A stretch of 63,666 nt of DNA, counting the filler, from Octopus bimaculoides (lineage: Eukaryota), in assembly GCF_001194135.2 (NCBI RefSeq). It is 6 parts of 6 records of this genome, joined end to end, with 100 filler letters (N's around TTAATTAATTAA, not from the genome) between each part and the next. Parts side by side here need not be neighbours in the genome. Positions count along the whole stretch, not along the records: positions 1 to 23,960 come from NC_068981.1; 5 more parts are not named here. One strand, 5' to 3'. Below, one piece after another: positions 1,607 to 23,916 of the stretch; within the stretch, counting starts at the first letter, position 1, and each line of letters begins with the position of its first letter. The translations under genes and the position numbers were made by a program. The notes under the pieces are model-generated. The model saw only the letters and a program-made list of their open reading frames with translations, did not search any database and had not been told where the DNA came from.

Positions 1607-1741
1607 ATGATGTATTTGACAGCAATACTTCCATATATTTTGGTCCTGCCTCTCCTAATTTGCATTTGCATGTTAGATGGTGCTTTACCCGGTGTAAAAT
1701 TTTTTCTTACACCTGGTTGGGACGCATTACAGAAACTACAG
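1607..1741 (+). CDS. SLC6 (SNF/NSS) transporter, internal exon encoding TM5-EL3 (135 nt, phase 0/0)
   Basis: Acceptor ttatag| and donor |gtatgt. Translates MMYLTAILPYILVLPLLICICMLDGALPGVKFFLTPGWDALQKLQ, matching SLC6 VVYFTATFPY...LPGA..G..FYL.P.W. 135 nt is the size I recall for this exon in vertebrate SLC6 genes. Confidence 0.93.
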
Positions 1742-1824
1742 GTATGTAATCAACTATTCACAAAATTCAATAGAAAATAGTTTATTTCATTTATAATCAC
1801 AAAAAAAAAAAACTTTGTCTTTTC

Positions 1825-2428
1825 TTTTATTTCTTTCAATCACTAGATTGCAGACATACTGAGGCACAACTTTGATGAATCTAGTTGACCAAATAACCCT
1901 ACTGTTATGTTTTTTAAGTCTGGTACTTATTCTGTTGGTCTTTTTTTGCCAAAGTGCTAAAGCGTTAAGTTATAAGGAAGTACATTAGCCAACAACAGTT
2001 CTCAAGTGGTGGTGGTGGTGGTGGTGATGGTGGTGGTGGTGGGAACAAACACACACACATATCCATGTACATTTCATCATCATTACTATCATCATTTAAT
2101 GTCCACTTTCCATGCTGGCATGGTTTGGACAGTTTGACTGAAAATTGGTAAGCTGAGGAGCTGCACCAGGTTCCAGTTCTGATTTGGCAAGATTTCTATG
2201 GCTGGATGCCCTTCCGAGCATCAGCTAGTCCAAGAGAGTAGTGGGTGCTTTTTTTACATGCTACTGACATGGGTGCCATTGACTTGACGCCAGCATCAGA
2301 CATGACTACAATCTCTCTTAGCTTGACAGCTCTACACAAGCATGGTATATCGCCAAAGGTCTCAGTCACCTGTTACTACCTCTGTGAGGCCCAATGCTTG
2401 AACAATGCTTTTTATGTGCCGCCGGCAC

Positions 2429-2478
<50 letters not shown>

Positions 2479-2603
2479 TTACCAAATTCACTCTTACCAA
2501 ATACACAAATAGAAGACACTTTCCCAATCTGCCATGCAGTGGGACTGAATCTGAAATCCCATGGTTGCAAAATGATCTTCTTAACTGCACAGCCATGCTT
2601 GTA
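1825..2603 (-). mobile_element. Decayed family-A SINE (1825-2060 and 2475-2603) split by an RTE 3'UTR insertion (2076-2430)
   Basis: Both flanks align to the intact family-A copy at 3113-3513; the middle matches the RTE 3'UTR at 49690-50091. Confidence 0.7.
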
Positions 2604-3112
2604 GTATTTTGGCTTGAAAATTTATAATTATTTATCCATAAGTAACAGTTTTTTGTTGTTCTTTAGACAGTTAATGTGAACAAATATCGTTTATAACTTT
2701 AATTAAATTAAAGTTCAGTATTTTCAAATCTTTGACATCAATGAGATGTTCATCCTTTTTGTGTTTTAGCTAATCTATTAACTTTACAAGTAATACAGTT
2801 ATTACTGTAATGTAATTTCATAGTTCCATCATATAGCTCTAAATTGGTCTGAGAAATCTGTAAACATCCAGCTTCCTCTTCGAATTGACAGGAAGGAAAA
2901 TCAAAGGGAACAGCCATGAACATAAGATAAACACTAATGTATATGGTGAATTATGCACACCAGAATTAAATTGTTAGATGTCATAGTAGTGGGGCAGAAA
3001 GATTAAATTATTAAGCCAGAGATCATCGGGGGAGAAGGTTAGAAAAACAATCAAGAAGAAAACATGCGATTTACAGGAATGATTTGACCTATACAATACA
3101 GAGAGAAACAAA

Positions 3113-3513
3113 TACTCTTTACTCTTTTACTTGTTTCAGTCATTTGACTGTGGTCATGCTGGAGCACCGCCTTTAGTTGAGCAAATTGACCCCAGGACTT
3201 ATTCTTTGTAAGCCTAGAACTTATTCTATTGGTCTCTTTTGCCGAACCGCTAAGTTACGGGGACGTAAACACACCAGCATCGGTTGTCAAGCGATGTTGG
3301 GGGTACAAACACAGACACACAAACACACATACATATATATACATATATACGACGGGTTTCTTTCAGTTTCTGTCTACCAAATCCACTCACAAAGCTTTAG
3401 TCGGCCCGAGGCTATAGTAGAAGACACTTGTCCAAGGTGCCACGCAGTGGGACTGAACCTGGAACCATGTGGTTGGTAAGCAAGCTACTTACCACACAGC
3501 CGCTCCTGCGCCT
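3113..3513 (-). mobile_element. Near-intact tRNA-derived SINE, family A (~400 bp)
   Basis: - strand head aggcgcaggagcggctgtgtggtaag...ggttccaggttcagtccc with A/B-box-like motifs, conserved core gggcaag/acaagtgtcttctactatagcctcgggccgac, internal AT/GT microsatellite and an (AAAGAGT)-like tail. Multiple copies in the window. Confidence 0.9.
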
Positions 3514-3601
3514 ATTGTAAAGTTTATATGAAAATGATAACTGAATTTACTCATTTTAATGCTTTCAAAATGTGTCACTGATTTCTTTGTCATTTGTTTT
3601 C

Positions 3602-3836
3602 AAAACTCTTTTGACACTGGTTTACCTGAAACTTCCCCTGGTCCTATGATTCAAATTTCTTGTTTTAAAGTGATCTAAATCAAAACCTTCCATCAAAACT
3701 TCCTGTTTCAATTTATGCTCCAAATACCAGCTTAATAATGACAAATTTATTTAACTACATTCTTCATTATTTTTTATAATTAACTAAAAGAAAGAAGTGT
3801 GCTATTTCTACAGAGATATGGTAACAAGAAGGTTAA
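3602..3836. mobile_element. Decayed piggyBac-type (TTAA) MITE
   Basis: Starts aaaactcttttgacac and ends ggtaacaagaaggttaa, degenerate versions of TTAACCCTT...AAGGGTTAA. Confidence 0.4.
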
Positions 3837-3864
3837 CAAAATATTATCATTCTATCATTTTCAG

Positions 3865-3968
3865 GTGTGGTCTGATGCAACTAAACAGCTTTTTCTTTCA
3901 TTAGCTCTCGGTACAGGGAGTATTTCAGTATTAGCTGGTTATACTCATTTTCACAGCAACTGTTTTAG
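3865..3968 (+). CDS. SLC6 transporter exon encoding TM6 (104 nt, phase 0/2)
   Basis: Acceptor tttcag| and donor |gtaagt. Translates VWSDATKQLFLSLALGTGSISVLAGYTHFHSNCF(R), matching VWxDAAxQIFFSLGxGFG.L...ASYNxFxNNCYR. Frame is continuous with the previous exon. Confidence 0.95.
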
Positions 3969-5299
3969 GTAAGTTCATTTATTTTTTTAATTCATTTCTT
4001 AATAAAAATGAAAAACATTTCATAACTTAACATGTAAACCATGCACTGAATTCATTAACTTATGGAGGTTTAAAAAAAATCCAGTCTTTGTTTAAAGTTA
4101 ATATTAAGGACTACAAAATACCAATCAAAGAATGCAAACCAAAACCTTGTGAGTGTAATTTGGTTGTTAGAAACTGTGTGGAAGCCTGTCAGAAAGAGCA
4201 TTCCTATTTTGATGGTGGTAGATTTACCTTGGTCATTGCCTGCCCTTAATACTCTACTAAATTGCAAAAATGACAAGAATTCAGACCAGTTCTGCAGTCT
4301 GAAGATGGTTTCCTGCCTGCCTTCCACCAGTCGCAAAGACCCTCAAAAGACCATAAGCATTGCCTTTCCTTTTCTGACTATACCATGTAAAGAAAATATA
4401 TTTTTTAAAACCCAACATGAAAGAAACTGGCTATAGAATGGAACTGTATACAAGGAATGTCTATTACAAATCTATAATGTCTTTTAGATTTGATTTGTCG
4501 TAGATTGTATCTCCTCTTTTTCTGTGGTCAGGCTTCAATGAAAATTTGAAGGTTTGGTCTTCTTCTCTGAAAGATGATTTTAAATGTATGGTCTTAGAAG
4601 CAAATTATTATTAACTATATCCTACCAAGTACTTTAAATCCATTCTGCAGATTTATGGTTTTCCTGATTCTTCACTAAATAAACTGTCTATTACCATCAT
4701 TACAACCTAATTATCTAGTTAATCTTGCTGGTTGTTGTGGTAGCATATGATTAACTAACTGATTCACTAGTTGTCCATCTGGCTAGTTGTCCATCTGGCT
4801 AGTTGTCCAACTAAGTAGTTGATTTGTTGCTCATTGGCAATTTTACATATCATATAAAAAATTATTTTGCTCTATGGTCAAAGCATTTTTGTGATTGCAT
4901 GAAGATTGCAGGTTGAGTTGGGTCAAGTAGCGTTTTAAAAATATTTTAACAGTATTAATTAAACTAAACCATTAATATTGGATACATTATTAATAAATTT
5001 TATAGAAAACATAAGATCTTTAGTGTAAGAAGAAAGTTTAGATTAGAAGCATCATTGTCAATGGTAGGCTTAATTCATTGTCAAGGTCAACTCCATCATC
5101 TCACCCTTGGATGCCTTTAGTAGACTGAATCTCACTTTGAGGATAACTTCCTCCTTTCTTCCACAAGCCTTGGAGATCTTATAAAGGGTCATGGGCACTA
5201 CTCTTCCATCTCTAATTAAGCCAAAAGCAATTTCTTTTTTAAATGTTTGAGTCTAGTGAATTCTTATAATTGTTTTAATACAGGTTTTTCCCACACTGA

Positions 5300-6560
5300 C
5301 ATAAATTGGACTGGTTATATGTTTAATATTTTTATTTAGGTTTCTAGGTTTCTGACAATAAGTCCATTCGGTGAAGAGAAGTAGTCTCAGAACTAACCTT
5401 ACCATTTCTTTCCAGGTCTTTCTTGGTCTGCTCACACAACAGAAATTTTTCACCAACAATACTTTCACTCAATTATGTGTAATCCATCAACAATACATAA
5501 TTAAACCAAAGTAATCCTCTCCTGCAGTTAATAGCTTCTGGTGCAAAAACAAATCATTTGCACTCTTCTTTCATGTAAATCAACATTGCACACCCAACGT
5601 GCTATACTCATATCATTTCTCTCCAGCCACTGAAGGTCATTATACATCTTCCATGGTAAATATCAAATAGCAGTACATATTTTATGTATGCTTCAGAGCA
5701 TCTAATTTTCCTAAAGTGAGAGAATAAAAGTAACAGATCCATGAGCCTCTGTCATCCTATTCTTATCATAAATACTATAATTTTACAACATCCAAGCCAT
5801 GCTCTGTAGTAACTGTGTTGCCTAAGTAGAAGAACAAATCTACAACTTTTGGCTTTTAATTCAAGGTTGTTACTTCTGTGCGTTTGAAGTTCTGATTCCC
5901 TACTGAGACTCTGTTTGTTATCTCACTACACATGTTATGTATCCATTGCTTACAGCAATATTTAGTATTAAGTTCATTCTGCTACCTTCCATTTCATTGA
6001 ACAAAGCTCTCTTCCTAGAATGCCACAGGGTTTTTCTTTTCTATCAAATAATACTCTAATCTTTTTTCATATTTAACTTTAAACTTTCTGACTAGACCAC
6101 TCTTCCATGTTTTGAACTCCTCAATAGATTCTATAGAGAGAACCAGATTATTGGCATATAAAAATTTCCAAGGACATCTAGTTCTGAATTCCTGAATAAT
6201 TACCTTAAAGACTATGATGAAGAGAAGATGGATAAGAGCAGGTCTACTGGAACTCACCTGTAAACTAAGATGTTCAATGAATTCATTAATCAAACTCATA
6301 TTACTTGACATCTTTATGTTCTGAAGTACTCTCCTTAACCATTTCTCTACTGGTGATCTTCTGAATACCCACCTGGCCAGACAGCATGGGAACCTTGTCC
6401 CCTTACAGTTTAATTTTTTCCACCAGAAATATAGTATCCATGGTCCTTCACTTAGGCACCAGCATGAATTTCTACCAGCCCAACCTAACTTCATTTTGCA
6501 CTATTTATGATATGTCTTTACCCTACTTACATAAACTGATCTGTCCACTTGTATCTCTCT
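5300..6560 (-). mobile_element. Heavily decayed RTE-clade LINE, RT and C-terminal region
   Basis: LLFIIVFKVIIQEFRTRCPWKFLYANNLVLSIES corresponds to RTE LLFIIVLEALSREFRTGCPWELLYADDL; SRPRKTWKEMVRLVLRLL corresponds to GRPRKTWDEVVKHDL. Many stops and frameshifts. Confidence 0.8.
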
Positions 6561-7044
6561 AATTTTCCATGTCTCTTCGAAGAAAGTTAGTTATGTTTCT
6601 ACAGGAAGGAGCCATAAACTGCCATTCTACATACATGTATAAGACAATATTTGATTAAAAAAATAACAATAGATTCTTTTTGTATCCATTTCTGATAACA
6701 TTGCCAAATGATCTGATACCTGCTTCTGGTTGCCAGGTGAATTTAAGGATGTAAAAATGAAGGGGTTACTCACACACACACACACACACACACATATAGA
6801 TATGACAAAACATATCTAGAACTATAAGCTAGTAATCTCATGCCAAAAATACTGCACAATTTAACTTCTACTTGTGTTTGAGCTGCTGCTAGAAAAATAT
6901 CTTTACAAGATTCTAGACTAATTTTGAATTTTAAAGTTAGTAACAGTTTCACGCTGAAGGTCATTATTCATCAATAACGTTAATTAAGTTATTGAAGGAT
7001 TTATTTATCTCAGTTTTGTCTAATTATGCTGCACTGGGATGGCA

Positions 7045-7450
7045 GTCATATTGTCTTGGGTCCAGTTTCACTGCATGCCACCTTCAGAAAGTATCTTTTA
7101 CTATAGCTCCTGACCAACCAAAACCTTATGAGTGGATGTGGTAGATGGAAACTGAAAGAAACTCATCATATATATATATATATATGTATATATGTACATA
7201 TATGTGTGTGTGCGTGTGTGTGTGTGTGTGGCATCATATGATGGTTGTAAATAAACATCATTGGCATACAAGCAAGGTTGTTTGTTTCCAGTCTTCCTTC
7301 AAAAGCATGCCTACATATGGAAAATTATTACCTTGCTTGGAAACCAATGAGTATTAGCAACAGGTAGGGCATCAAGCCATATAAAATCTGCCTCACTAAA
7401 TTCCATCTGACCCATGCAAACATGGAAAAGTAACATTAAATGATGGTGGT
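7045..7450 (+). mobile_element. Chimeric SINE (family-A head and core, different body, RTE-type (GAT)n tail): family D
   Basis: Core aaaccttatgagtggatgtggtagatggaaactgaaag, microsatellite, body ...attattaccttgcttggaaac..., tail agggcatc...aaaatctgcc...cccatgcaaacatggaaaag...ttaaatgatg. Confidence 0.75.
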
Positions 7451-7750
7451 GGTGGTGATGATGATGATGATGACGATGATGACGACGACGACGACGACGA
7501 TGATGGTGGTGGTGGTGGTGGTGGTGGTAGTGATGGTGGTGAAATCACTAAATTGAAGTTGGATTTATTAAATTAGTAATAATTTATTTTTTTAAATAAA
7601 GAATCCAGTCATAAGTCATTATTTCTGTACCTTTTCTCTCTCCTTTTTCATTTCCCAATTAAAATCCATTTACTGTTTGAAACTTAGACAATTTCAATAA
7701 AAAGAAATGTTTATCTAATTCCCTTTTATTTATTTATTTTTTTTGTTTAG

Positions 7751-7875
7751 GTTTTCACTCCTAGGTTGCACTGTTAACCTTGTTAGTACAGAAATATTGG
7801 GACTATTAATGTTTGCCATTCAAGGAGTTTTCACAAAAATTTATCAACTTCCACTCAATCGTCTAGAAATTCCTG
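7751..7875 (+). CDS. SLC6 transporter exon encoding TM7-EL4 (125 nt, phase 2/1)
   Basis: Acceptor ttttgtttag| and donor |gtaagt. Translates (R)FSLLGCTVNLVSTEILGLLMFAIQGVFTKIYQLPLNRLEIP. Phases fit both neighbouring exons; the TM7 Asn and Gly positions are kept. Confidence 0.88.
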
Positions 7876-7966
7876 GTAAGTTATAATATAGAATTTACAA
7901 ACTTCTACCAATTTAGTTTCCAATGAAACTTGCTGAGTGAAGTATTTATATTTCTCACTTATTTAA

Positions 7967-8185
7967 CCCTTTAGTGCTTAAACGGTCATATCTGGCCAAA
8001 ATATTCTACCTGTTTTATGTTCAAACTAGTCAGATATGGTCATTCATAGCTACCTTATTGTGTCATTTTAAAAATAAACAATCACATAATTGAAATCTCA
8101 AAGCCATGAAATGATGCAAGATTAATTTTACATGGTGTGAATACATAAGTTTTACATTTGACAGAATAATCTGAATGCTAAAGGG
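7967..8185. mobile_element. piggyBac-type MITE with TTAA target duplication
   Basis: TTAA|ccctttag ... ctaaaggg|TTAA (TSDs at 7963-7966 and 8186-8189). A related diverged copy lies at 36115-36338. Confidence 0.85.
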
Positions 8186-8395
8186 TTAAGACCATAGTAA
8201 TTAAGTATCTTTTATACTTGTTATTCTTTTTAGTCTCAATAATTTCTATATGGTTCAAGAACTGTTTCAAAAGCAAGAATTTTCAATGAATTTATAATGT
8301 GTTTGCTGATAAAAATTCTAAAATCACTGGCTTTGTGCCAAAATGTGAAAGAATTTGACACAGAAAAGACAGTCTATAAGATCTTTTATATCTTA

Positions 8396-8801
8396 ACTTT
8401 TACTTGTTTCAGTCATTTTGACTATGGCCATGCTGGAGTACCACCTTGAAGGGTTTTAGTCAAACAGATCGACCCTTGGACTTATTATTTTTTGAAGCCT
8501 AGTACTTATTCTATTGGTCTCTTTTGCCAAACTGCTAGGTTACGAGGGACATAAACATACCATCACCAGTTGTCAAGCAGCAGGGGGCGGGGAACAAACA
8601 CAGACACAGAGACACACATACATAGAAATATACATATAAAATCGGTTTCTTTCAGTTTCCATCTACCAAATTCACACACAAGGCTTTGGTTGGCCCGAAA
8701 CTATAGTAGAAGACACTTGCCTAAGGTGCTAAGCAGTGGGACTGAACCTAGAACCATGTGGTTGAGAAGCCAGCTTCTTACCACACAATCATGCCTGTGC
8801 C
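8396..8801 (-). mobile_element. Family-A SINE, full length, diverged
   Basis: Collinear with 3113-3513 over its whole length. Confidence 0.88.
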
Positions 8802-9197
8802 ATAATTCAGTGAAAATATTTCAAAAGTATCTTTTTCATCCACACATACATGCACAAGCATACACACACAACACATGCATACTCACATACACACACATAT
8901 TGATTCAATGAAAGTCGATTACCTTCATATATAGTACTCAGTACATATTACAAGTGTAGAGTTTCATATTTTTATATTTAATCATTTGTACTATGATCAT
9001 TTCAACTCCTGGTCAGCTTTAAGTGTCCAGGACAACCAGGAATTACAACAAATGATTAAATAAATATATATACATATGTAAGTATGGTGGGGGTACCCGA
9101 GCATGGGCACAGCCACTGGTTGAAAGCAATAAAAGGAATTACATGTGTGTGTGTGTGTGTGTGTCTGTGTTTGCACGCACGCGTATGTATCTCTTGT

Positions 9198-9420
9198 CTT
9201 TTACTCGTTTTAGTCATTCAACTGAGCCAGGCTGGGGCTCCACCTTGAAGAGTTTTAGTTGAATAAATTGACCCTGGTACCTTTATCTTTTAAGCCTGGC
9301 ATTTATTATATCGATCTCTTTTGCCAAATAGCTAAGTTTGGGTATGCAAATGCACTGACACCAGTCGTCAAACAGTGGTGGATGATAAACACAGCCACAA
9401 AGACACACACATAGATATAT
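9198..9420 (-). mobile_element. Family-A SINE, 3' half
   Basis: Aligns to the 3113-3330 portion of the intact copy. Confidence 0.75.
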
Positions 9421-10732
9421 ATGTAGGCATGATTGTATGAATGCATGTATTTATGTATGTTTGTATTTTTGTATGTACATATGTATGTATGTCATTATTC
9501 AGTTTTATTTCAAGATTTCTTACCAAATGACTGAAACAAGTAAAAGAGTAAAAGAGTATACATTAGACAGTTTATATTTCTAGTCATTTCTAATTGCATA
9601 TTACAAACTGAGGATAGACAGAATTTTGGACTGTGGGATTCTCAATTATTAAAATGTATCATTTACTGTCTAATTTGTGAAAAAAATGTATTTTAATAAA
9701 TGTAGGATAATAATTTGCATGGAACTGCAGGCAGAGTTCTTTTGGATATGTTAGACCAACCCTAGCTATGTTCTATATTCCATGTTTCATTTCTTTTCTT
9801 TGCCATTTAAGTTTCCTACTTCTTTCAAACAAGCTTTGATCAAAACGTAATTAACTATATTGTCAGTACAAGTTTAGCTCTTCTTTCTCTTTTCCTTCTA
9901 TTGATATTAACAACTTGTATAAATATGTATTCAATTTGTAAATGAATGCAATTCAGAAGCAATATTCTCTTGTAAGTGCATTCTTTTACCTCATTATCTG
10001 ATTACAGGAACAAACTAACCACAAGTGCTGACACGTTTTTCTTTATTGATAATCACTCTATAAGAATAAAATATTTGCCCCTACATTTATCTCTTTTGAC
10101 ATTACTCTGCATATGTAGTTAGCTTGCAATTGTATTTGTGTAATCTAATTACATGACTTTATTAATTTCCTATTGCTACTGTACTTTGCTGTGAATGACC
10201 TGTCTTTATAAGTAAACCTTTTACAACAGCATTCTTTTATGATTACCTGCTTACATGAAGTTACTTGTTATGATGATATTCTGCTGTGATTACCTATTTG
10301 TATAAACAAACTGCTTACAGCTATATTTACCTCATCTAATAACATCTATATAAAACAAATACCTTTATAACTGCATTCTTCATTTCAATCAGATTTCTGT
10401 AAGGACATATTCTTTACAATAGCATTTTTTTTTTTTTTTACCCTGAATAAACCACTTCAGCATAATTATTCATCATTGCAATTATGTATTTTAGAATAAA
10501 ATAAGTCTAACATATAACTTTCATTTCTATATAATACTTTAAAAACATCATAATAAGTTTATACCTTTCCAAGTTGTATGATTAATTCTTAGTAATAATA
10601 TTCCACCTTTCTGTTTGAGCCATTATCAACTTCCTAAAATCTTTCCCATTATATTTCCTAATGTACTCAACTTAAAATATCTATTCTAATTTCTGAACCC
10701 TTCAGGGATTTAACCTTCTACATCATTATATC

Positions 10733-10771
<39 letters not shown>

Positions 10772-11061
10772 AGTAAAAATAAATACAAAAAAGGTGTTTT
10801 TTTTGTATGATTGTGTATAGAGGAATATATTATTTTGTTTAAAAGAGTTCCAACACTGTCTGTTTTTTATGTTTTATTTATATTCCTGCAGAACCAATGT
10901 GGGGTATAGAATATGGAATATACAATATATAATATAATATACAATATATAATATAAAATAAGATAAAATAAAAATGGATGGCACCATGAAAGAAAGTATT
11001 GAATGTAGATGAAATATTGAGTGTTCAATATAAAGGATCAAATATATAAATATAAGTATAT

Positions 11062-11106
11062 AAAGGCGACTCGAGTTTCAGGGCTATTTCCCTTCGTCAT
11101 GGCTGG
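11062..11106 (-). ncRNA. Hammerhead-ribozyme-like motif (type I, minimal, Penelope/retrozyme-like), probably decayed
   Basis: - strand reads aUGACGA-AGGG(aaauag)CCCU-GAAA-C(UCGA)G-UC: core boxes, 4-bp stem II, short stem III with palindromic loop and a GUC triplet. C3 is changed to A and stem I is imperfect. Confidence 0.5.
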
Positions 11107-12152
11107 TATGACAGACTTTAACAGATGTATGTATGTATGTATGTATGTATATATTCATTTAGAACTTCATATACTTAACATTTATTTTTCTATACTAGCA
11201 TGGGTTAGAAGGGAAGTTATTTTAAACAAGATTTTACCGTTGAATAATGCTCTTCCTATCAGCAACCCTTAACTATTTCCAAGTAAGGGATTTTTTAAAT
11301 TCTAGACATCTTCAAAACACAGAGGAACCAGGCATAATGTCAACAAGGAATGTTATATATATATACCCACACATATAAATATATATATGGATGGATGGAT
11401 GGACGGACGGACAGAAGGATGGATAGACAAACAGATAGACAGAAGGATGAACAGATATAAATGAAGTGTATATAACTAAAACTTTTGGTAATTTCCTCAG
11501 AATATAAGAGGATAAGTTTAAGTTGAATATGAAGAGGATTCTGATTAATGATTTGATAAAATAACTATCAAATGAGTTCATTCAGAAAACTGAAACTTAG
11601 ACTAAAAGAAAAGATAGAGATATACCAAGATAATTAAAAATGATGAAAATGAACCTATCCAGTTTGTGTTCAAGATTATTAATCCATAAGGCATAATGAT
11701 TTAGTGGTATTTAAGCTGCATTTCATAGGCAGCAGTGCTAATTACTCTTAATGTCTCTGTTTATTTAACTGAAAGTAATTACCATTATCTTTTACAATTG
11801 ACTAATTATTTTTCCAAGGAACATTTAACTAACCACAAAATGCTCTTTAGATTTGCTGAAATGATCACATCATAGAGACTAGAAAGAGTAATTACTAGTT
11901 AGATAGAACAATTACAAATTCTTTCAAACACAATCTTTGTTTCAGTAGGTTCAAAATGAAAGAATTCTTTTTGTCTGCCATTTGCATCTGCTTTTTGTCT
12001 GCCATTTGTTGGTGAATATGCATATTGATATTTTGAGTTCAATCTCACTACACAGTACCTTGGGCAAATGTCTTCTTCTGTAGCCCTGGGCCAGCCAAAG
12101 CCTTGTGAGTAGATTTGGTTGATGGAAACTGAAAACCTGTTGCATATGTATA

Positions 12153-13442
12153 TGTTGGGTCATCCTATAAATAATGCATTTTTTTATACTTCTTTTATTT
12201 TTCAAAATTAAGATAAACAAAGTTCTTTTTTAATCTAAAATATACTCTCCTTCATTTTCTACAATGCTCTTCCATCTATCTTGTAGACTTGCAAGGCCCC
12301 TCTTCCAAAATTCACTTGTCCGTGACGAAAAATACTCCTCCAGTACTGTTCTGACCTCGACTACAGAATTCATATTTTTACCCCTCCAAATGATTTTGAA
12401 GACTGTGGAATAAATGATAATCAGATGGGGAAACATCTGGCGAATATTGTGGGTAGGGCATCGTTTCCCATTCAAACTGCTCCAGCCTTTGAAATGTCAT
12501 CCTTGCTATATGTTGCCAAACATTATCATGATGGAAGAACACCTTTTGTGTTGAAACCAAAGATAGTCGTTTTTCTCCTAGCGCTGACTTTAGCCACTCA
12601 AGCTGCTCACAGTAGATCTCCTTTGTTATTGTTTGGTTTGGTTTAAAAGTTCAAAGTGGAGTAAACCATTCATATTCCACCAAACAGATAACAACACCTT
12701 ATGTGGCTGAAGACCTTCTTTAACCTGGGGTGCCGGTGTTTCTCCTTTCCCTACCCACTGTCTTTGGTGCTTGACATTTTTATAGAGAACCCATTTCTTG
12801 TCACCAGTCACTATTTGGTCCTAAAAAGGTTCATTCATGGGATACAACAGTAAAGAAGAGCACACGTTCACTCTCTGCATGCAATTAGACCAGGGAAGTT
12901 TATGAGGAGCCTACTGACCTAGTTTGCTAACTTTTCCAATGGCACACAGGTATCGATGACTGATTGAATGACCAAATCCAAGCTTCTTTGATAGTTCCTC
13001 AACAGTTACAATGGGATTTTGTTCCACCAGGGTTTGCAGGATGTCCTTGTCAAGCTCTACAAATCTTCCAGGAAGAGGTTTGTCTTCTAGGCTGTAGTTT
13101 CCAGCTCAGAATTTCCGGAACCACCATTGACACTGGCTTGTGCTTATTGTCCGATCTCCATATACTGCATTAATATTTCTCGTACTTTCCATTGCGTTGT
13201 TGCCTTTATTGAACTCATAAAGCAAAATATGCTGAATATGCTCCTTTGTCACTTCCATTATAGCTTTGAAAAAAAATGGCTGTTAAAATTGAACTGCACT
13301 CTTCAAAACTTGCACTAAGAATAAGGACGAGATAAAATTACTACCTGTTTTTATAGCAAGTTGATGCAGGTAGATTAACCTGTCCCCATCCAACTTTTAG
13401 TTCATGCAATTGAAAAAACCACATTATCTATAGGTTGAGCCA

Positions 13443-13445
<3 letters not shown>
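12153..13445 (-). mobile_element. Full-length (~1.3 kb) mariner DNA transposon, inactive
   Basis: TIRs tgttgggtcatcctataaataatgc and cattatctataggttgagccaata, flanked by TA; canonical mariner length. Confidence 0.92.
12230..13258 (-). pseudogene. Mariner DD34D transposase pseudogene
   Basis: MEVTKEHIQHILLYEFNKG...WWFRKF*; IVTGDKKWVLY; KVLLSVWWN; HHDNVWQH; YSPDVSPSDYHLFHSLQNHL; W...VENEGEYILD*. At least three in-frame stops plus frameshifts. Confidence 0.92.
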
Positions 13446-13473
<28 letters not shown>

Positions 13474-14537
13474 TGTATGTATGTATGTGTGAATGCTTGT
13501 CTGTATCTTCTCATCTTAATGTCAAGTGATGGTTGTAAGTGAGTGTCACTGTCATACAAGCAGTGCCATTCATTCCCAATATTCTGTGGAAACATGCCTG
13601 GCTATAGGGAAATATTACTTTGCTTGGAAACAGGTGAGGGTTGATGATAGGAAGGGCATCCATTCATAGAAAATCTGCCTTAATAAATTCTGTTTCACCC
13701 ATGGGAACATGAAAGGGGATGTTAAAATGATGATGATGAATCACCAATATTAGATAGTCTTAAACCATCAAAATTATTTTCATTTTTAGATTTTTAAATG
13801 TATTTTTGTTTTATTTTCCTTTATACAAGAGGGAAGTATAAGTACCATCAGTATTCTCAAAGCCCATTGCTACATAAATCATTGCCTCGAATGAATAATT
13901 GCCATCAGTATCGGCTAGTGTAAGGAGTTTGAGTTGCATTATGCATTCATAAAAAACACAGAAAGCATAGCAAGTTCAAACAATGTTAGTTGAAGCTATT
14001 TTACAATTATAACTAATTGATATTTTGATATCTTCAAAATATAGTTAGTTTGTGCAGATTATTAACTGAAGTAGGGAAAACACACATTCTATGAATTTCT
14101 TCCAGACTACCTCTTTTCATAAAATGTTTAATTAGGCTATGTAATGTCCAGAAAATTTCTAAAAAGGATGAAATAGTAATTACATGATTACCACTGAATA
14201 GAAATTTTAAGCACTTCATAATAAGTAAACAATAAAAAGAAAATTAGATATGTACATTCTATGCATTTTCCCCTTATTCAATAATTCCAAATTTAAATTT
14301 CCATTCCTACCTAACACTATGAAGAATTTATTATCAACTGTCCAACAGGGGACATCGTGTGTTTGTAAAATTTCATTTGACTGATTCAAAATAAGGAACC
14401 GCCTTAATCTATTTTTTAATCTTATTGGATTCTTATCAAAGGTGTCTTTTATTCATTTTATACTTCGCATATCTGTTTATATTAAAAAATTTTTTTTTTT
14501 TACTTCTCTAATGAAATCTTACCATTTATCTTTACAG

Positions 14538-14785
14538 CCCTTGACATAGCATTCATTATATTTCCTGAGATCACATCATTAATGCCCTTTCCACCAGTGT
14601 GGTCAGCTCTTTTTTATCTTATGTTGACCATCATCACCTTAAATAGCATTGTAATATTCACCCAACTAGTTGTATCAGGACTGGAGATAATATGGCCAAT
14701 GCCTGAAAGGAACTGTTACAAGCTGTTCTGGTTGTTTGTCATATGTGTATTATCTTTCATTTTTTCCCTCTTCATACTTTCTCAG
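14538..14785 (+). CDS. SLC6 transporter exon encoding EL4b-TM8-TM9 (248 nt, phase 1/0)
   Basis: Acceptor tctttacag| and donor |gtaaga. Translates (A)LDIAFIIFPEITSLMPFPPVWSALFYLMLTIITLNSIVIFTQLVVSGLEIIWP...FSLFILSQ, matching LAFIxYPEA...MPxxxxWSxLFFxML..LGLDS. Confidence 0.95.
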
Positions 14786-14985
14786 GTAAGAAACTTTTGC
14801 TAAAAAAAAAGGAAATTATCACTGTACAGTTATTTTAAATATTCTCTAATTAATTATAAAACATTTTTGTGAAGATTAATTAAATGATAGCATGTGAAAT
14901 CTTCTAAATAAATATTCCAATAACTCTATATGATACTTTTCTGTGTCTTGGGAGAATCGTTATGCCAACTTTTTCTTTAAGTATA

Positions 14986-15187
14986 CTATATTTTCTGGCA
15001 TACAAGTCGACATAGTTTATAGTGTAAACATGTGTAAACATTCAAACATCATCACTAACTTTCCAAATCCTGTTGCCTTCAACATGGAACGTTTGGTTCT
15101 CCAAACTTGTTTTGGTATATAAGACAACCTACTGTTTTTGGCTAACTTTTGGTCTGAAAAATTCGACTTGTATGCCAGGAAATACAG
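14986..15187. mobile_element. Tc1/mariner (Tc2/pogo-like) MITE, 202 bp
   Basis: TA|ctatattttctggcatacaagtcga ... tcgacttgtatgccaggaaatacag|TA: 25-bp TIRs with 2 mismatches. Confidence 0.85.
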
Positions 15188-16989
15188 TAATGAGTTTGTT
15201 AATTTCAAGCCTAAAAATATGAACAAACATGATTTAGCTATTTTTTTTATTTGTGTGAGATTTTTTTTTTTTTTATTAGGTTTTTGAAATAACTTTTCTC
15301 GTAGAGTTCTTATTAATTGATTATTTAATATAAAATACAAGTGAAGCAATTATGATACAAATAGCCTATTGTCAGATTTGCTATAGTATTTTAAAAGAAA
15401 CTAGGAAGTTTTCCCCCTACACATGCCTAACCCTACACATATATTCATAAGAAACACAGAAAAAATAATTGGTATTTGTAAGCTTTATGTAAGATATGTG
15501 CATTTCTACACGCCTGTTGTAATTACGTGTGCTAATTAACCCATTACACTAACCAATTGGCATGCTTCTTCAGTATTATCAACAAAACAACACAATATGA
15601 TATGTGTTGCATATCCTTATATACCCAGTCATGCATATTGTAAATAAGCAAGTTGGTAAAGCAGAAAAGAGCCAACTGAATTGCCTAAGAGGTAAATCAG
15701 TTTATGTAGAGAGCTGCACAATATGCTAGAAATATCAGTTAAACCTCCCTGAAATCATATTTTGCCATCTTGTAAAAAGAATAAACACATTGGACAAGGT
15801 GGTTTCTGTATACAAAATGATGGGATGATCATGGCTGGAATGCCTCTGCTCTTAGGTCTACTCCCTCAGAACAGACCCAAAGCTAAACAAGAGGCCATCA
15901 ATAACATTTGAATTTGTGTCAAATGGAGTTGTATTTATATTCTGTTGCCAGAATAGCAGCATGTCATTTGCTAATGTAATTGTTCTCTAGCTGGTAATTA
16001 GCATTTGCATTACCCAATCACTATCAGCAACAGCAGCGTTTTTATCACAATTACCATCACCATTATTGTCATGTTAATTGTCATCATCATCATCAATATT
16101 CCAATTTTTGGTGTATTACTTGGGACTGTCAAAGGTCTTCTCAGACTAGTGAAATTGACACAGGAAGAACTGGACAAAGTTATTAATGTAAAACTACAGA
16201 AGAGAGATAAATGGTGGAAGGAGAGATAAGTGGGTCAGGTGAAGTTTGGATGGAGACTGTGGGCAACTAATTAGTGCAGAGAAGCAGAGGCTTCAGTGAT
16301 AACAATAGAAGAGGCAATGAAAGAAAGTTAAATGAAAGGACATTGCACATTTGTGGATAAGTGCCTGCAATGTGTTAGTGATGGAATCTTCATCACTAAA
16401 GAAATGAAAGAAACCCTGATTTTATTATAAAAACCTAGTTTTATCATCAAAACCTAGTTCTTAATTTTATATTTAGAAGGAATTAAGCACAAAAGACTAA
16501 ACTCATTGGATAGGACAGCAATGTGATTAATTTAATAGATCTAATTTCCTAAAATTTTTCTGCAATTCTATGAAAAATAAGGCAAACTTCATTCCATCGT
16601 AATATACAATTTACTTTCCAGAAATAAGGTAACTGATGGTGGTCTGAGATCAAATTGATTGAAATATTATTGTATAGATATAAATATTGAAGAAAAGTTT
16701 TCATCTCTAAAGTTAACACTAATTGAAAAATTATGATCCTAGAATTAATAATGCTCCCAAGACAATGGAATATTTGCTGCATGATAATATATCATTAATA
16801 TATTGTTAATTGTTAGTCTGGCATTTTCCATTTAGCAAAATTACTCTCTATTCTTCTAAAAAGACATATTTTTCAAAAATGCTGTTGTTATAAAAAGTAT
16901 TATTCTTTGCAATGTCTTCTATTATTTATTTACTTTTTTTGCTCATATTGATATTTACTTAGATATTATTTTTTTGTCTACTTTACAAG

Positions 16990-17190
16990 GCTGATATTTA
17001 CACTGATCAAACAATGGATGTTTACCTTCCAAGCTGGTCCTTGCCATTTATTTGCTTTTTTGAATGTTTGATTCTGATGTGGTTCTATGGTCCAAAGAAA
17101 ATTTTGCGACATATCACTGACATGACTGGTAGCCTTGATCGCTTTTTTTGGAAATTAATGTGGAAAGCAATTACACCAATAACAATACTG
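16990..17190 (+). CDS. SLC6 transporter exon encoding TM10-TM11 (201 nt, phase 0/0)
   Basis: Acceptor ctttacaag| and donor |gtaagt. Translates ADIYTDQTMDVYLPSWSLPFICFFECLILMWFYGPKKILRHITDMTGSLDRFFWKLMWKAITPITIL, matching FExxxxxWxYG.....DIxxMxG....xWKxCWxxxTP. Confidence 0.95.
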
Positions 17191-17237
17191 GTAAGTTATC
17201 TAAAAACAACTCTTTCTCTGACAATCCTAACTTCATT

Positions 17238-17238
<1 letters not shown>

Positions 17239-17328
<90 letters not shown>
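17239..17328. repeat. (CT)n microsatellite about 50 nt downstream of an SLC6 donor
   Basis: Perfect CT dinucleotide run. Confidence 0.95.
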
Positions 17329-17333
<5 letters not shown>

Positions 17334-17566
17334 TCCCTCCTAAATACACATATTTAATTGGAGAGTAGTCATTAAGAAGATAAAATGGAAAACAAAAATA
17401 TTGATGTTGTCCATATATATAATATAAATGTTTATACCCATATTGTCTATGAGGAGAACTTCTCAAGAGACACTTGTGTAGCATTGCTATTTTCAAATTT
17501 CACAAAACCACATACACAGATGCACACACACACACACACACACAAATTCATAGATAGATAATTATA

Positions 17567-17598
<32 letters not shown>

Positions 17599-17823
17599 GA
17601 GAGAGAGAGAGCGAGAGCGAGAGAGAGTTATTGTCATCATCATATGGAAGTCAAACAGATAAATAAACCTATCTTCATCTCTCAAACCTCCTGACTTTAG
17701 GCTTTTTATATATATATATACACGTTTGTGTATGTGTGTGTGTGTGGAGCATTATTCGTTTGGCAAGTTTTTTACACCTCGATGTCCTTATATATATGTA
17801 TGTATATATATATGTGGGTGTGT

Positions 17824-17860
<37 letters not shown>

Positions 17861-18162
17861 GGATTCTTCATAGAACCAGGTACTTAAAAGGATATGCACC
17901 AGGTAAGGTTCGATAAACCTGTGATCACCACCTCTGGTTGATTAAATATCTAGTAGGATATTCAGGTTATGCATACAGAGAAAACCACCCCTACAAGTAT
18001 TAAGTACCTAGGGGTTGTGTTGATCATACATTGTTTGGAATACTCCAGCGTATCTGATGTGCCATGAATCTCTATGGTGCATTATAAGCAAATGAATAAT
18101 AACAGACGATGGATAAATGTCAGCTCATTACAGCTGTTTTTTACACATTTTTTAATATGTAT

Positions 18163-18313
18163 GTTTGGCGTTAGGAAGGGCATCCAACTGTAGAAACTCT
18201 GCCAAATCAGATTGGAGCCTGGTGTTGCCATCCGGTTTCACCAGTCCTCAGTCAAATCGTCCAACCCATGCTAGCATGGAAAGCGGGCGTTAAACGATGA
18301 TGATGATGATGAT
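18163..18313 (+). mobile_element. Young 5'-truncated RTE 3' tail ending in (GAT)n
   Basis: tggcgttaggaagggcatcc...aaatcagattggagcctgg...gttaaacgatgatgatg; nearly identical to 36972-37134 and 49990-50091. Confidence 0.9.
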
Positions 18314-19005
18314 ATATATGTATGCATGTATATATGCATACACACATATGGCAACTTTCTTTTTATTTTTGTGAATATCTATGAATACATTTAATTTCTT
18401 ACCTCTAATTTATTAATATCTGACATAAAATAAGTTGTTTGCTCTTTGCTGTTGGAATTGCATTAGTGCAACACCACCACCACCACCACCACCAACAACA
18501 ACAACAATTTCAACCATACTTAAAGGTAGCAATATTTTTTACATATTAGATTGTCTCGGTAGTCTAAAATAACTCTTGAACTCTGTCATGGTTCTAGGAA
18601 ATACCTGTCGCAGCAACTGTGTATCATTTCCAGTGGTTAATGCCAGGGATTGAAGGTGAGAAAGACTGTTGGCATCTTTCAAGCCCATTATTACCACCAG
18701 TCATTGTCACAGTGTATGCAAACTATTTACTGTATATTTCATGCTGCTAATCTAGTGGTAGCCAAGTTAATTAGCTTACACATGGTCATTGAAATTTACT
18801 TGCTTACTTCAACTGATAACAGTTACTTACACCATCAAGACACAACAGTCTCTAGAATCTCTCGGTATTAAGAAGCTACAGTGAAATGTATAAGGGCCAC
18901 AAGATCTATTAGTGTTGTGTTATCTGATTATATACAATGTACAGAAAAACACAGAAATGTATGTTTTATTATTTTCAAGGTATGTTACCTTCAATTTGAA
19001 TACTA

Positions 19006-19211
19006 CAGGGTGTCCACAAAGTTTGGGTACATGGGGATTAACCCATACTTTAAGAAATTATTATTTCTTATATTTAATTGTTTATGTTATGATTTTATTT
19101 ACTCCATGTACCCACATGGGGATTAGAACATACTTTAAGAAATTATTATTTCTTATATTTAATTGTTTATGTTATGATTTTATTTACTCCATGTATCCAG
19201 ACCTTGTGGAC
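19006..19211. mobile_element. Tc1-type MITE with an internal 85-bp tandem duplication, cut by a gap
   Basis: TA|cagggtgtccacaaagtttgggtacatgg ... ccatgtatccagaccttgtggac|N; repeat units at 19030-19114 and 19115-19199. Confidence 0.8.
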
Positions 19212-20111
19212 NNNNNNNNNNNNNNNNNNNNNNNNNNNNNNNNNNNNNNNNNNNNNNNNNNNNNNNNNNNNNNNNNNNNNNNNNNNNNNNNNNNNNNNNN
19301 NNNNNNNNNNNNNNNNNNNNNNNNNNNNNNNNNNNNNNNNNNNNNNNNNNNNNNNNNNNNNNNNNNNNNNNNNNNNNNNNNNNNNNNNNNNNNNNNNNNN
19401 NNNNNNNNNNNNNNNNNNNNNNNNNNNNNNNNNNNNNNNNNNNNNNNNNNNNNNNNNNNNNNNNNNNNNNNNNNNNNNNNNNNNNNNNNNNNNNNNNNNN
19501 NNNNNNNNNNNNNNNNNNNNNNNNNNNNNNNNNNNNNNNNNNNNNNNNNNNNNNNNNNNNNNNNNNNNNNNNNNNNNNNNNNNNNNNNNNNNNNNNNNNN
19601 NNNNNNNNNNNNNNNNNNNNNNNNNNNNNNNNNNNNNNNNNNNNNNNNNNNNNNNNNNNNNNNNNNNNNNNNNNNNNNNNNNNNNNNNNNNNNNNNNNNN
19701 NNNNNNNNNNNNNNNNNNNNNNNNNNNNNNNNNNNNNNNNNNNNNNNNNNNNNNNNNNNNNNNNNNNNNNNNNNNNNNNNNNNNNNNNNNNNNNNNNNNN
19801 NNNNNNNNNNNNNNNNNNNNNNNNNNNNNNNNNNNNNNNNNNNNNNNNNNNNNNNNNNNNNNNNNNNNNNNNNNNNNNNNNNNNNNNNNNNNNNNNNNNN
19901 NNNNNNNNNNNNNNNNNNNNNNNNNNNNNNNNNNNNNNNNNNNNNNNNNNNNNNNNNNNNNNNNNNNNNNNNNNNNNNNNNNNNNNNNNNNNNNNNNNNN
20001 NNNNNNNNNNNNNNNNNNNNNNNNNNNNNNNNNNNNNNNNNNNNNNNNNNNNNNNNNNNNNNNNNNNNNNNNNNNNNNNNNNNNNNNNNNNNNNNNNNNN
20101 NNNNNNNNNNN

Positions 20112-20427
20112 ATGAAATTAACGTGCAAGTGGCTGAGCACTTCACAGACACGTGTACCCTTAACGTAGTTCTCAGGGATATTCAGCGTCACACAGTGTGA
20201 CAAGGCTGACCCTTTGAATTACAGGCACAACAGAAACAGGAAGTAAGAGTGAGAGAAAGTTGTGGTGGAAGAGTACAGCAGGGTTCGCCCCTATCCCCTG
20301 CCGGAGCCTCGTGGAGCTTTAGGTGTTTTCACTCAATAAATACTCACAATGCCCGGTCTGGGAATCGAAACCGCGATCCTATGACCACGAGTCCACTGCC
20401 CTAACCACTGGGCCATTGCGCCTCCAC
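20112..20427 (-). mobile_element. tRNA-derived SINE, family E
   Basis: - strand head gtggaggcgcaatggcccagtggttagggcagtggactcgtggtcataggatcgcggtttcgattcccagacc (A box TGGCCCAGTGG, B box GGTTTCGATTCC), followed by a non-tRNA body shared with 32286-32540. Confidence 0.8.
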
Positions 20428-20508
20428 GACACAACTTATATAAAAGAGACATTTGTTTAGAATCCACATGTGATATCAAAATACACACACTTACACATGT
20501 CCACACAT

Positions 20509-20545
<37 letters not shown>

Positions 20546-20879
20546 CATACACATGTGTACACTTGTATATGACAGGCTTCTTTCAAGTTCAATTTATCAG
20601 ATCCACTCATGGGGCTTTAGTTGGGCTAATACTATAGTAAAAGACATTTCCCCAAAATGCCATGCATTGAGACTGAACCCTCCACCTATGTGGGTGTGGG
20701 TATGTATATGAGTATGTATGCATGAGCTTGTGTGTTTGTGTAAGGGTAAAGTGTAAAGACCCCCTTCAGTCAGGAATGACCATAGGTTTGCACCTAGAAG
20801 TTCTTCTCCGAGGCACAAGTCCGGACATGGTTGTTTATGGAAGACCAGCAGTATGGAAGACAAGACGTACTTTGGCCTG

Positions 20880-21262
20880 TCTCTTCTCAAAGCTCGTTTT
20901 GTTCACCGTTCACCACATCCCCTTGTTATGGCTTAACAGCCCTCACCATTTGTTTTTACCGTTTTGCTCTTACTGTCCTGTTTTTGTTACTACTTTAACC
21001 CTATGCAAAAAGTCCCAAATTTTATTTAATTTGTTTTGCATGAAGGACTGTTTTAACAAAGTCGCGTCTTGTCCCTTCTTTCAAAATGTGGAGTAGATAA
21101 AACAAGGGACAACTGATGAAGGGAATATTCTTTATGTTGCCTGTCTCGTTTCTCTCTTTGTTTCTTTCGTTGCTCGAAAAATGTTCGTTTTCCATGCTTT
21201 TGCTTTTTATGTTCTCGTTTCTCATTCTGTTCACATTTTTTTGACATCCAGTACCCATATAT
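20880..21262 (+). mobile_element. Probable Penelope-like element terminal remnant carrying a hammerhead half-site
   Basis: gGTC-ttgtccctt...aagggacaa-CTGATGA, followed by a T-rich tail of a type I recall from octopus Penelope-like repeats. No coding homology seen. Confidence 0.4.
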
Positions 21263-21952
21263 GCATGTATATATACATATATAAGTAGGCATGCACATGT
21301 ATGTGTGTATATATGCATATATATGTATATATATATATGTATGTATATATATGTATATATATATATATATATNNNNNNNNNNNNNNNNNNNNNNNNNNNN
21401 NNNNNNNNNNNNNNNNNNNNNNNNNNNNNNNNNNNNNNNNNNNNNNNNNNNNNNNNNNNNNNNNNNNNNNNNNNNNNNNNNNNNNNNNNNNNNNNNNNNN
21501 NNNNNNNNNNNNNNNNNNNNNNNNNNNNNNNNNNNNNNNNNNNNNNNNNNNNNNNNNNNNNNNNNNNNNNNNNNNNNNNNNNNNNNNNNNNNNNNNNNNN
21601 NNNNNNNNNNNNNNNNNNNNNNNNNNNNNNNNNNNNNNNNNNNNNNNNNNNNNNNNNNNNNNNNNNNNNNNNNNNNNNNNNNNNNNNNNNNNNNNNNNNN
21701 NNNNNNNNNNNNNNNNNNNNNNNNNNNNNNNNNNNNNNNNNNNNNNNNNNNNNNNNNNNNNNNNNNNNNNNNNNNNNNNNNNNNNNNNNNNNNNNNNNNN
21801 NNNNNNNNNNNNNNNNNNNNNNNNNNNNNNNNNNNNNNNNNNNNNNNNNNNNNNNNNNNNNNNNNNNNNNNNNNNNNNNNNNNNNNNNNNNATATATATA
21901 TATTTATATATGTATATATATATATGTATATATATATATGTGTGTGTGTGTG

Positions 21953-21987
<35 letters not shown>

Positions 21988-22409
21988 CTTCATTTATCTA
22001 TTTTTGTCACAGTTTGGCTGACCAAAAACTGTTGGTAATAGCTCTAGTTAAGAATTCAAATGTCCAGTTCTATCTCATTATTATCATTAATATTTTCTCG
22101 CACTGGCAGCCAGCCTGAGTTTTTGCTGTTTTGTGGTGTGCTCGCCATTTCCACCCCCACCACCTGTACCAAAAGTCTCTATCTTCTGACCCCTCTCGGA
22201 TGTCTCTTTTATGAACACCTCCAAAGGCTTATATAGGGTTTATCCTTTCTTAGGGTTTATCTCTTATGTAATGTAGTGATTATGTAGCACATAAAAATAA
22301 TGGTGTACTGTATGCAAGTTGAAGGATTTTGTATGTTTATGAGTTCTGCCAAATGCGAGCTTTCTTTTCAGGTACATGACGCTGCTACCTCACATCCCAG
22401 GGTCTTGAG

Positions 22410-23866: not shown

Positions 23867-23909
<43 letters not shown>

Positions 23910-23916
23910 AACACAC

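Follow-up and report, generated by a model that had tools for sequence, protein, structure and literature searches.

We analysed a 63,666-nucleotide stretch of DNA from Octopus bimaculoides (hereafter, the window; NCBI RefSeq assembly GCF_001194135.2), which joins parts of six records of the genome end to end with filler between them, and focus on its first piece (positions 1-23960, from NC_068981.1). This piece is AT-rich (roughly 34% G+C), rich in microsatellites and interrupted by assembly gaps at 19212-20111 and 21373-21891, and between positions 1607 and 17190 it carries five plus-strand exons of a gene of the SLC6 transporter family. Their closest relatives are the N-terminal modules (N-modules) of long, unnamed molluscan proteins that hold two SLC6 modules each, and several of the residues that form gates and ion sites in canonical SLC6 transporters are changed in them.

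The five exons run from transmembrane segment (TM) 5 to the start of TM11. Exon a (1607-1741, codons 1-45), which has tblastn matches to SLC6 proteins, encodes TM5 and the start of extracellular loop (EL) 3 (MMYLTAILPY...LQKLQ), with C19 in place of a conserved Arg (SERT R298); it is in phase 0 at both ends, between an acceptor ...TTATAG and a donor GTATGT, and the Ylistrum N-module has an exon with the same borders (VVY...NPQ), also in phase 0. The unwound TM6 (VWSDATKQLFLSLALGTGS...HFHSNCF(R)) lies on exon b (3865-3968, codons 46-80, the last of them split; borders ...TTTCAG and GTAAGT), together with Q53, L56 (3895-3897), S57, A59, T62 (3913-3915), Y71 and T72; its top exon-level matches are N-modules, that of Ylistrum at 61% identity, for example, and its phase-2 intron falls in the CF/R codon, as in Ylistrum. 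Exon c (7751-7875, codons 80-122, split at both ends; ...GTTTAG and GTAAGT) could be aligned to TM7 of GAT1, SERT and LeuT, and encodes TM7 and EL4a, including N89, T93 (7788-7790) and E94 (7791-7793), with a phase-1 donor as in Ylistrum. EL4b, in which A-L-D-I replaces G-P-G/S-L, is followed on exon d (14538-14785, codons 122-204; ...TTACAG and GTAAGA) by TM8 with I154, T155, N157 (14642-14644), S158 and Q164, by the intracellular-gate region with E171 and I172 (14687-14689), and by TM9, ending in a phase-0 donor after Q, again as in Ylistrum. Exon e (16990-17190, codons 205-271; ...TACAAG and GTAAGT) opens with A205-D206 (D206 at 16993-16995) in place of the canonical Gly-Gly and continues with TM10 (D214, E229), a DMTGS loop and the start of TM11; taken as a single exon it matches N-modules best (that of Mytilus at 48% identity, E=2e-10), and its phase-0 donor after ...IL is shared with Ylistrum.

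Joined, these exons give a coding sequence of 813 nt and 271 codons with zero stops, five of five acceptors being AG and five of five donors GT, which agrees with the first-pass annotation of this DNA, made from the sequence alone, in its claim of a 271-codon open frame with canonical splice sites (ten of ten). Stop codons have a frequency of 0.057 in non-exonic frames of the plus strand (about one per 17 codons), and an open frame of 271 codons would arise by chance with P ~1e-7. In four of the five exons the reading frame closes 4-39 nt beyond the donor, and beyond exon e it stays open for about 150 nt more. A (CT)50 microsatellite at 17239-17339, roughly 50 nt past the exon e donor, translates as a Leu/Ser run, and because it leaves the frame open, the open reading frame (ORF) called at 17014-17343 overshoots the true end of exon e.

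The 271-residue product matches the Pfam SNF domain (PF00209) with E=1.8e-55 and 189 bits (cut-off 27) over profile positions 206-474 of 524, that is, TM5 to TM10 and the start of TM11. Sequences of 104 SLC6 or neurotransmitter:sodium symporter (NSS) entries in the PDB match it at E<=1e-3, the best solved structure by sequence being human GAT1 (E=6.6e-45, nearly gapless). An AlphaFold2 model of the fragment has a predicted local distance difference test (pLDDT) score of 62.7, with TM6 below 50, and its Foldseek comparison with SLC6 structures gives TMq values of 0.63-0.71 to GlyT2, GAT1 and TauT. No further SLC6 exon was found in 1-1606 or 17191-23960 by tblastn with 192 SLC6 proteins and E values up to 5; the gene therefore extends past both ends of the piece or into its gaps, and the 271 codons are only the TM5 to TM10/11 part of a longer gene whose TM1-4 and TM11-12 exons lie outside the piece.

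A HMMER scan of 1.84 billion representative proteins returned 2851 SLC6 relatives, none above 36% identity to the octopus query, and the top matches were long molluscan proteins labelled 'uncharacterized' (Mytilus, 1093 amino acids (aa); Ylistrum, 1573 aa; Physella, 1699 aa; and a partial protein of Lottia). The full-length relatives carry two separate SNF stretches, that is, two SLC6 modules, and a search with the Ylistrum protein recovered the same architecture of roughly 1570-1670 aa in Pecten, Mizuhopecten, Argopecten, Saccostrea, Ostrea, Pinctada and Crassostrea, and a shorter two-module model of 1387 aa in Sinanodonta. In bivalves and gastropods these proteins (roughly 1570-1700 aa) run from a fast-evolving N-module through a conserved cytoplasmic linker to a glycine-transporter-like C-terminal module (C-module) and a long tail. 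The linker has the consensus ..WGPGPL.NQEP..P[DE]YVICTPDI..GLAL.TANLY[IL]PN.., and its spacing (WGPG, 16-17 residues, Y[VI]IC.PD, 18 residues, TANLY) is fixed in 11 of the 13 species with N-module sequence; in Ylistrum both modules lie inside a single 98-kb gene. We considered whether the two-module models are annotation read-through and rejected this on the fixed-spacing linker, the single Ylistrum gene and the fact that no tail or stop of its own follows the N-module. These proteins are already in public databases, without a name, and the SLC6 family is well known; we found no description of a tandem, fused or double SLC6/NSS protein in the literature. Two-module SLC6 models also occur in Gigantopelta aegis (1227 aa, P0003) and Strigamia maritima (1023 aa, P0005), with both halves canonical-looking and without the molluscan linker motif.

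The two modules have diverged at different rates, the mean Kimura distance being 0.88 among N-modules and 0.49 among C-modules. Of the 41 columns with a conservation of at least 90% among canonical SLC6 proteins, N-modules keep 23-28 and C-modules 37 (29 in the Physella C-module). The C-module is well conserved and its nearest outside relatives are insect glycine-transporter-like proteins, whereas in TM1 of N-modules the extracellular-gate Arg has become Lys, Trp or Gln in nine of nine species checked, and the seven bivalves among them no longer have the Na1 Asn, which Physella and Lottia retain; most bivalve N-modules also show Q332L, N368H and a non-polar residue at S372 (SERT numbering). 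C-modules have their own peculiarities in every species seen, the octopus one included: the Na1 Asn (SERT N368) is Asp, the Na2 Asp (D437) and G338 are both Ser, and the TM10 Glu (E508) is replaced by a non-acidic residue. These residues suggest that ion coupling may be altered in the 'working' half too.

Several comparisons place the octopus exons with the N-modules. The query scores higher against the N-module than against the C-module in 10 of 11 two-module proteins (153-173 compared to 125-139 bits), the exception being Crassostrea P0170, in which the N-module match is partial. A phylogeny with SLC6 relatives had been proposed with the first-pass annotation, and in a neighbour-joining tree of 86 sequences and 270 columns, rooted on LeuT, the query is sister to all 13 N-modules, the clade being recovered in 94 of 100 bootstraps; on these sequences its position is as expected of a cephalopod orthologue. 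The query also keeps 29 of 31 columns that are invariant across seven diverse N-modules, the two lost being N81F and G206D; when annotated orthologues are left out one at a time they keep 72-97% of the invariant columns, and just 21-24 of the 31 are shared by canonical SLC6 proteins. Among the invariant columns that the query retains are the clade hallmarks Thr at SERT F341 (GTG), [ST]HFH, DMTG, C230 and K259, and Asp or Glu at SERT 404 (an acidic EL4) and Thr, Ser or Cys at N351 are likewise clade-wide. In position and phase (0, 2, 1, 0, 0) all five introns agree exactly with the Ylistrum N-module, and neither the Ylistrum nor the Octopus C-module has the intron between TM5 and TM6. Since the majority of the five introns are ancestral to SLC6 genes as well, intron structure discriminates weakly; together, motifs and introns nevertheless give the grouping support that is independent of the tree. 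Apart from a Lymnaea fragment, a search with a profile of five N-modules yielded just NSS proteins that are unrelated.

The query is 34% identical to bivalve N-modules, as the gastropod orthologues are (Lottia 35%, Physella 31%), and has therefore diverged at the normal rate for an N-module, with no faster decay. Sequence comparison thus shows the exons as the cephalopod (Octopus) counterpart of the molluscan N-module, to all appearances a maintained one. The initial view of a lineage-specific SLC6 is not supported by this result, as orthologues in bivalves and gastropods make it a member of an old, mollusc-wide clade, and we rejected a cephalopod-specific reading on the same grounds. Several of the oddities listed for the octopus gene, such as Thr for F341 and the acidic EL4, are hallmarks of the N-module clade.

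Individual residues were compared in a MAFFT alignment of the 86 sequences, which includes SERT 280-557, LeuT 191-470 and GAT1 240-508 (the SERT and LeuT segments were checked and are essentially identical to the PDB chains in native numbering), and the rarity of each change was counted among 55 canonical SLC6 representatives. The alignment confirms all substitutions that had been read by eye, with L56 at SERT F335, T62 at F341, T155 at G435, N157 at D437, Q164 at E444, I172 at D452 preceded by E171, and T93 at S372 followed by E94, and equally the residues listed as retained (Q53 at Q332, S57 at S336, Y71 at Y350, N89 at N368, S158 at S438, D214 at E493 and E229 at E508). For EL4 the substitution stands and its register does not: the motif had been given as 'PALD', and SERT G402-P403-S404-L405 aligns with A122-L123-D124-I125. 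Deviations absent from the earlier list are C19 at R298, A59 at G338, T72 at N351 and A205-D206 at G484-G485. Within natural variation are D437N (4/55), F341T (4/55), G338A (9/55) and E444Q (2/55); rare or unseen are F335L (1/55) and S372T, G435T, D452I and G485D (0/55 each), the canonical state being Asp at 452 in 52 of 55 and Gly at 485 in 55 of 55. As marks of altered function, D437N, F341T and E444Q are not supported, the same residues being present in SLC6 relatives that are otherwise ordinary. Of the 41 conserved columns the query has 28, compared to 38 in SERT, 41 in GAT1 and 20 in LeuT, and the general claim of an SLC6 that is maintained but strongly atypical, its gate and ion-site residues altered, is supported. 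A separate octopus SLC6 that otherwise looks canonical and is annotated as 'glycine transporter 2' (XP_052824442.1, P0014) shows F335L, F341T, N368D and E444Q, so some of the 'atypical' residues recur among other cephalopod SLC6 genes.

Site by site, the TM6 and TM7 ligands of Na1 are kept (S57 for S336, N89 for N368), and among the TM8 ligands of Na2, N157 stands for Asp437, S158 is kept and I154 stands for Leu434. The gating network is unlike the canonical one: Y71 and the acid D214 are kept, but F335 is Leu and D452 is Ile; the Arg partners belong to the N-terminus and to TM1, beyond the piece. The chloride-site residues in view are kept as well (Q53, S57 and N89), S372 being replaced conservatively by Thr93, which retains the hydroxyl. 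Tyr121, the remaining chloride-site residue, belongs to TM2 and thus lies beyond the piece, like the TM1 ligands of Na1. By the published definition of the chloride site, which includes the equivalence of LeuT E290 and GAT1 S331 (PMC10137170), the diagnostic position is Thr93, and Glu94 aligns with LeuT V291. It had been suggested that Glu94 might make the protein independent of chloride; because the diagnostic position is Thr93 and Gln53, Ser57 and Asn89 are kept, this is not supported, and we rejected it, the Glu being in the wrong register, one position past the LeuT E290 site. Glu94 is unique to the octopus copy, other N-modules having mostly Leu, Ile, Val or Met there and canonical SLC6 proteins mostly Ile, Phe, Val or Leu.

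The second module also has a counterpart in O. bimaculoides. LOC106884409 (P0019/P0193), annotated as 'uncharacterized protein', falls within the C-module clade, is orthologous to the C-module and tail and 60% identical to bivalve C-modules over the compared region, and its tail has motifs in common with the bivalve proteins (NWGPALE.HW..IEY.PTV; D.V.FTT.G.RVPSLS; MR.RAILNHAYSNPQC; and a C-terminal PAVLE.EVTQ). Its SNF match begins at profile position 135, with TM1-3 missing from the model, which occupies 10001-47368 of the locus that we extracted (CM046601.1:86219093-86276460, L001). The model starts inside EL2 at an internal Met, although the reading frame of this exon already runs open from about 9959. 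Roughly 3.5 kb upstream and on the same strand, a second SNF model of 843 aa ends at 6503 of the locus and runs off its start, and the last two exons of this model encode the acidic stretch before TM1 with TM1 itself (about 4960-5220) and TM2 (6363-6500) of a C-module. The C-module TM3 exon was not found in the locus, where runs of N at 7523-8185 (663 N) and 9162-9552 (391 N) separate the two models; with the TM3 exon missing at these gaps, we therefore regard the two models as one gene split by an assembly gap. A length of 843 aa is about that of N-terminus, N-module, linker and C-module TM1-2 elsewhere (784-850 aa in Ostrea, Physella and Ylistrum), and the studied exons are likely to lie inside this upstream model. 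Interspersed repeats that are 92-97% identical occur in both the piece and this locus.

Taking these results together, we consider it probable that the five exons represent the TM5-TM10/11 part of the degenerate N-terminal module of a two-module (roughly 24-TM) SLC6 gene that is conserved across molluscs. The N-module would have retained the LeuT fold and, judging from its residues, lost the parts needed for canonical Na+/Cl--coupled alternating access; in the octopus copy, these putative losses comprise D452 to Ile, the pre-TM10 Gly to Asp, the F335 lid to Leu, the EL4 GPGL tip, Gly435 and the Na2 Asp to Asn. Given these changes in gate, Gly, lid, EL4 and Na2 positions here, and the losses of the TM1 Arg and Asn among other molluscs, a transport cycle is most likely absent from the N-module, and the non-transporting or sensor role raised in the first-pass annotation seems a reasonable reading. 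The N-module would instead probably act as a built-in partner protomer, tethered through the cytoplasmic linker to a working C-module, with a role that could be structural, in trafficking, regulatory or in sensing a ligand or ion. Both termini of the SLC6 fold are cytoplasmic, so a tandem of this kind needs no extra helix. Of the N-modules seen, the octopus copy is the least degenerate (28 of the 41 conserved columns, compared to 23-27 in others), and because the TM6 and TM7 ligands of Na1 and chloride (Q53, S57, N89 and T93) are kept, binding of an ion or ligand may persist in it. Some 30 residues are invariant in N-modules, which have persisted since before the divergence of the mollusc classes. 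We propose more tentatively, and at somewhat less than even confidence, that molluscs including cephalopods possess a natural SLC6 concatemer of about 24 TM segments, in which the N-module is a conserved, non-transporting pseudo-transporter that regulates, targets or senses for the glycine-transporter-like module.

Several observations weigh against an N-module joined to a C-module in the octopus, or against its loss of transport. A blastn comparison of the piece with the C-module locus shows only interspersed repeats in common (3113-3513, 18162-18342, 20113-20427 and 923-1102 of the piece and many places in the locus, at 86-97% identity) and no collinear overlap, and neither holds the linker motif, in a regular-expression scan, or the TM11-12 exons, so that for the octopus copy we infer the fusion to the C-module. 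No protein containing the five exons was found in the searched collections (roughly 15 billion sequences), though Octopus proteins are present there; a word-index homology search with the 271-aa model gave nothing at E<=1e-10, and exact look-ups of two ORFs of the piece and of the isoform P0019 gave no match. This absence may mean that the exons are unannotated, that the 843-aa model is outside the searchable sets, that the five exons are skipped in frame or that they belong to a separate copy. The tree is a neighbour-joining one on divergent sequences, in which the long branches of query and N-modules may attract each other. Loss of transport is itself read from residues, of which D437N, F341T and E444Q are found in ordinary relatives, and GAT1 with D395T or D395C still transports, Thr or Cys thus being tolerated at the Na2 Asp (PMC10137170).

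Alternatively, the exons could come from an SLC6 transporter that stands alone and is lineage-specific, its ion coupling or substrate being altered, with chloride independence through Glu94 included, as was the main reading of the first-pass annotation. An intact frame with an SNF match is what such a gene would have, the visible Na1 and chloride-site ligands, S438, the acidic residue at 493 and E508 are kept, the copy is nearer to canonical SLC6 proteins than other N-modules are, relatives that are otherwise ordinary also have Asn at D437 or Thr at F341, and the join to a second module is putative for these exons. We judge this explanation unlikely nonetheless: grouping, hallmarks and intron pattern are those of the N-modules of two-module proteins, Octopus has a C-module orthologue with a truncated 5' end and an SNF model upstream on the same strand, the LeuT E290 / GAT1 S331 position has Thr and no acid, and the residues of D452I and G485D occur in none of the 55 canonical relatives. 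Slightly less probable again is a relic, that is, an N-module recently inactivated, or exons skipped in the mature mRNA, and no longer under selection. The lack of any annotated cephalopod protein with these exons and the empty ORF look-ups fit this, several highly conserved residues are lost, transposon remnants lie within the introns, and an mRNA without the five exons (813 nt, phase 0 at both ends) would stay in frame. The frame, at odds with chance, its ten canonical splice sites and its conserved phases speak for maintenance, however, as do the 29 clade-invariant residues kept, on par with annotated orthologues, and a divergence equal to that of the gastropod orthologues. By a rough estimate, about 118 disabling hits (stops and indels) would be expected over 813 nt per unit of neutral divergence, so with an undamaged frame, neutral divergence after any loss of constraint can have reached no more than about 2-3%. 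Over the 271 codons and ten sites of the five exons we found no stop, frameshift or lost splice site, and a long-dead pseudogene was rejected on the open frame, the intact splice sites and the invariant residues.

Two of the changes in the octopus copy are single G-to-A differences from the conserved state: Asn157 (AAT, compared to GAT for Asp; 14642-14644) and Asp206 (GAT, compared to GGT for Gly; 16993-16995). A-to-I RNA editing is common in coleoids, and we speculate that it could restore Asp157 and Gly206 in the mRNA.

SLC6 transporters are usually studied as single units of 12 TM segments, and their oligomerisation and the cross-talk between protomers are debated. If the molluscan proteins are what they seem, a covalent SLC6 pair has been kept since before cephalopods split from bivalves and gastropods, a natural experiment in which one half is without gate and ion-site residues and still selected; it could reveal the role of a non-transporting SLC6 fold and the influence of one protomer on another. 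In annotation terms, the O. bimaculoides gene is represented by two incomplete models and the studied exons are in no protein record found, and inventories of cephalopod neurotransmitter and amino-acid transporters consequently miss it, which should interest cephalopod genome annotators as well as transporter biologists.

The intron between exons c and d contains a degenerate mariner (Mos1-like) transposase on the minus strand (12233-13258), split into several ORFs, with the domains HTH_48 (PF17906, E=2e-20, 13109-13258) and Transposase_1 (PF01359, E=1e-15, 12629-12811). An 85-bp unit is present twice at 95% identity (19029-19199), at the edge of the gap at 19212-20111, and may belong to a longer tandem array at which the assembly broke. 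Two further ORFs, at 6015-6494 (minus strand, 159 aa) and 22300-22629 (plus strand, 109 aa), look transposon-like by eye but match no Pfam family at E<=0.01. Scans of the piece for tRNAs and Rfam families gave nothing.

Among known proteins, the nearest are the N-modules of Ylistrum balloti (XP_060064335.1), Physella acuta (XP_059161224.1), Mytilus galloprovincialis (VDH94761.1) and, in part, Lottia gigantea (XP_009060822.1), to which the query is only 30-36% identical. Unlike most bivalve N-modules, which have Leu and His there, the octopus copy keeps Q332 and N368, and it has changes of its own at T155 (G435), I172 (D452), D206 (G485), E94 and C19. With canonical SLC6 transporters (GAT1/SLC6A1, GlyT1/2, SERT and DAT) it shares the SNF match, conserved intron positions and, in the modelled fragment, a LeuT-type fold, but it is 27-31% identical to them and lacks 13 of 41 near-invariant positions, including D452, G485, G435, G402/G404, N351 and S372. 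Like LeuT and chloride-independent NSS proteins, it has Gln at SERT E444 (LeuT Q361) and an acidic residue near the TM7 chloride-site position; unlike LeuT, it has Thr93 where LeuT has the acidic E290. The Na2 Asp-to-Asn change of N157 is the same as that of human DAT D421N, which brings an inward-facing bias, cation leak and anomalous efflux (PMC9617621); there it is a single change in a canonical transporter, whereas N157 is one of many, and Asn is present in 4 of 55 ordinary relatives. In concept, the proposed arrangement has parallels further afield. Duplicated or degenerate transporter modules include the tandem NarK1-NarK2 fusion of the MFS, asymmetric ABC transporters with a degenerate site, and the yeast sensors Ssy1 and Snf3/Rgt2, in which a copy without coupling residues serves as partner, regulator or sensor; their folds and families differ from those of SLC6.

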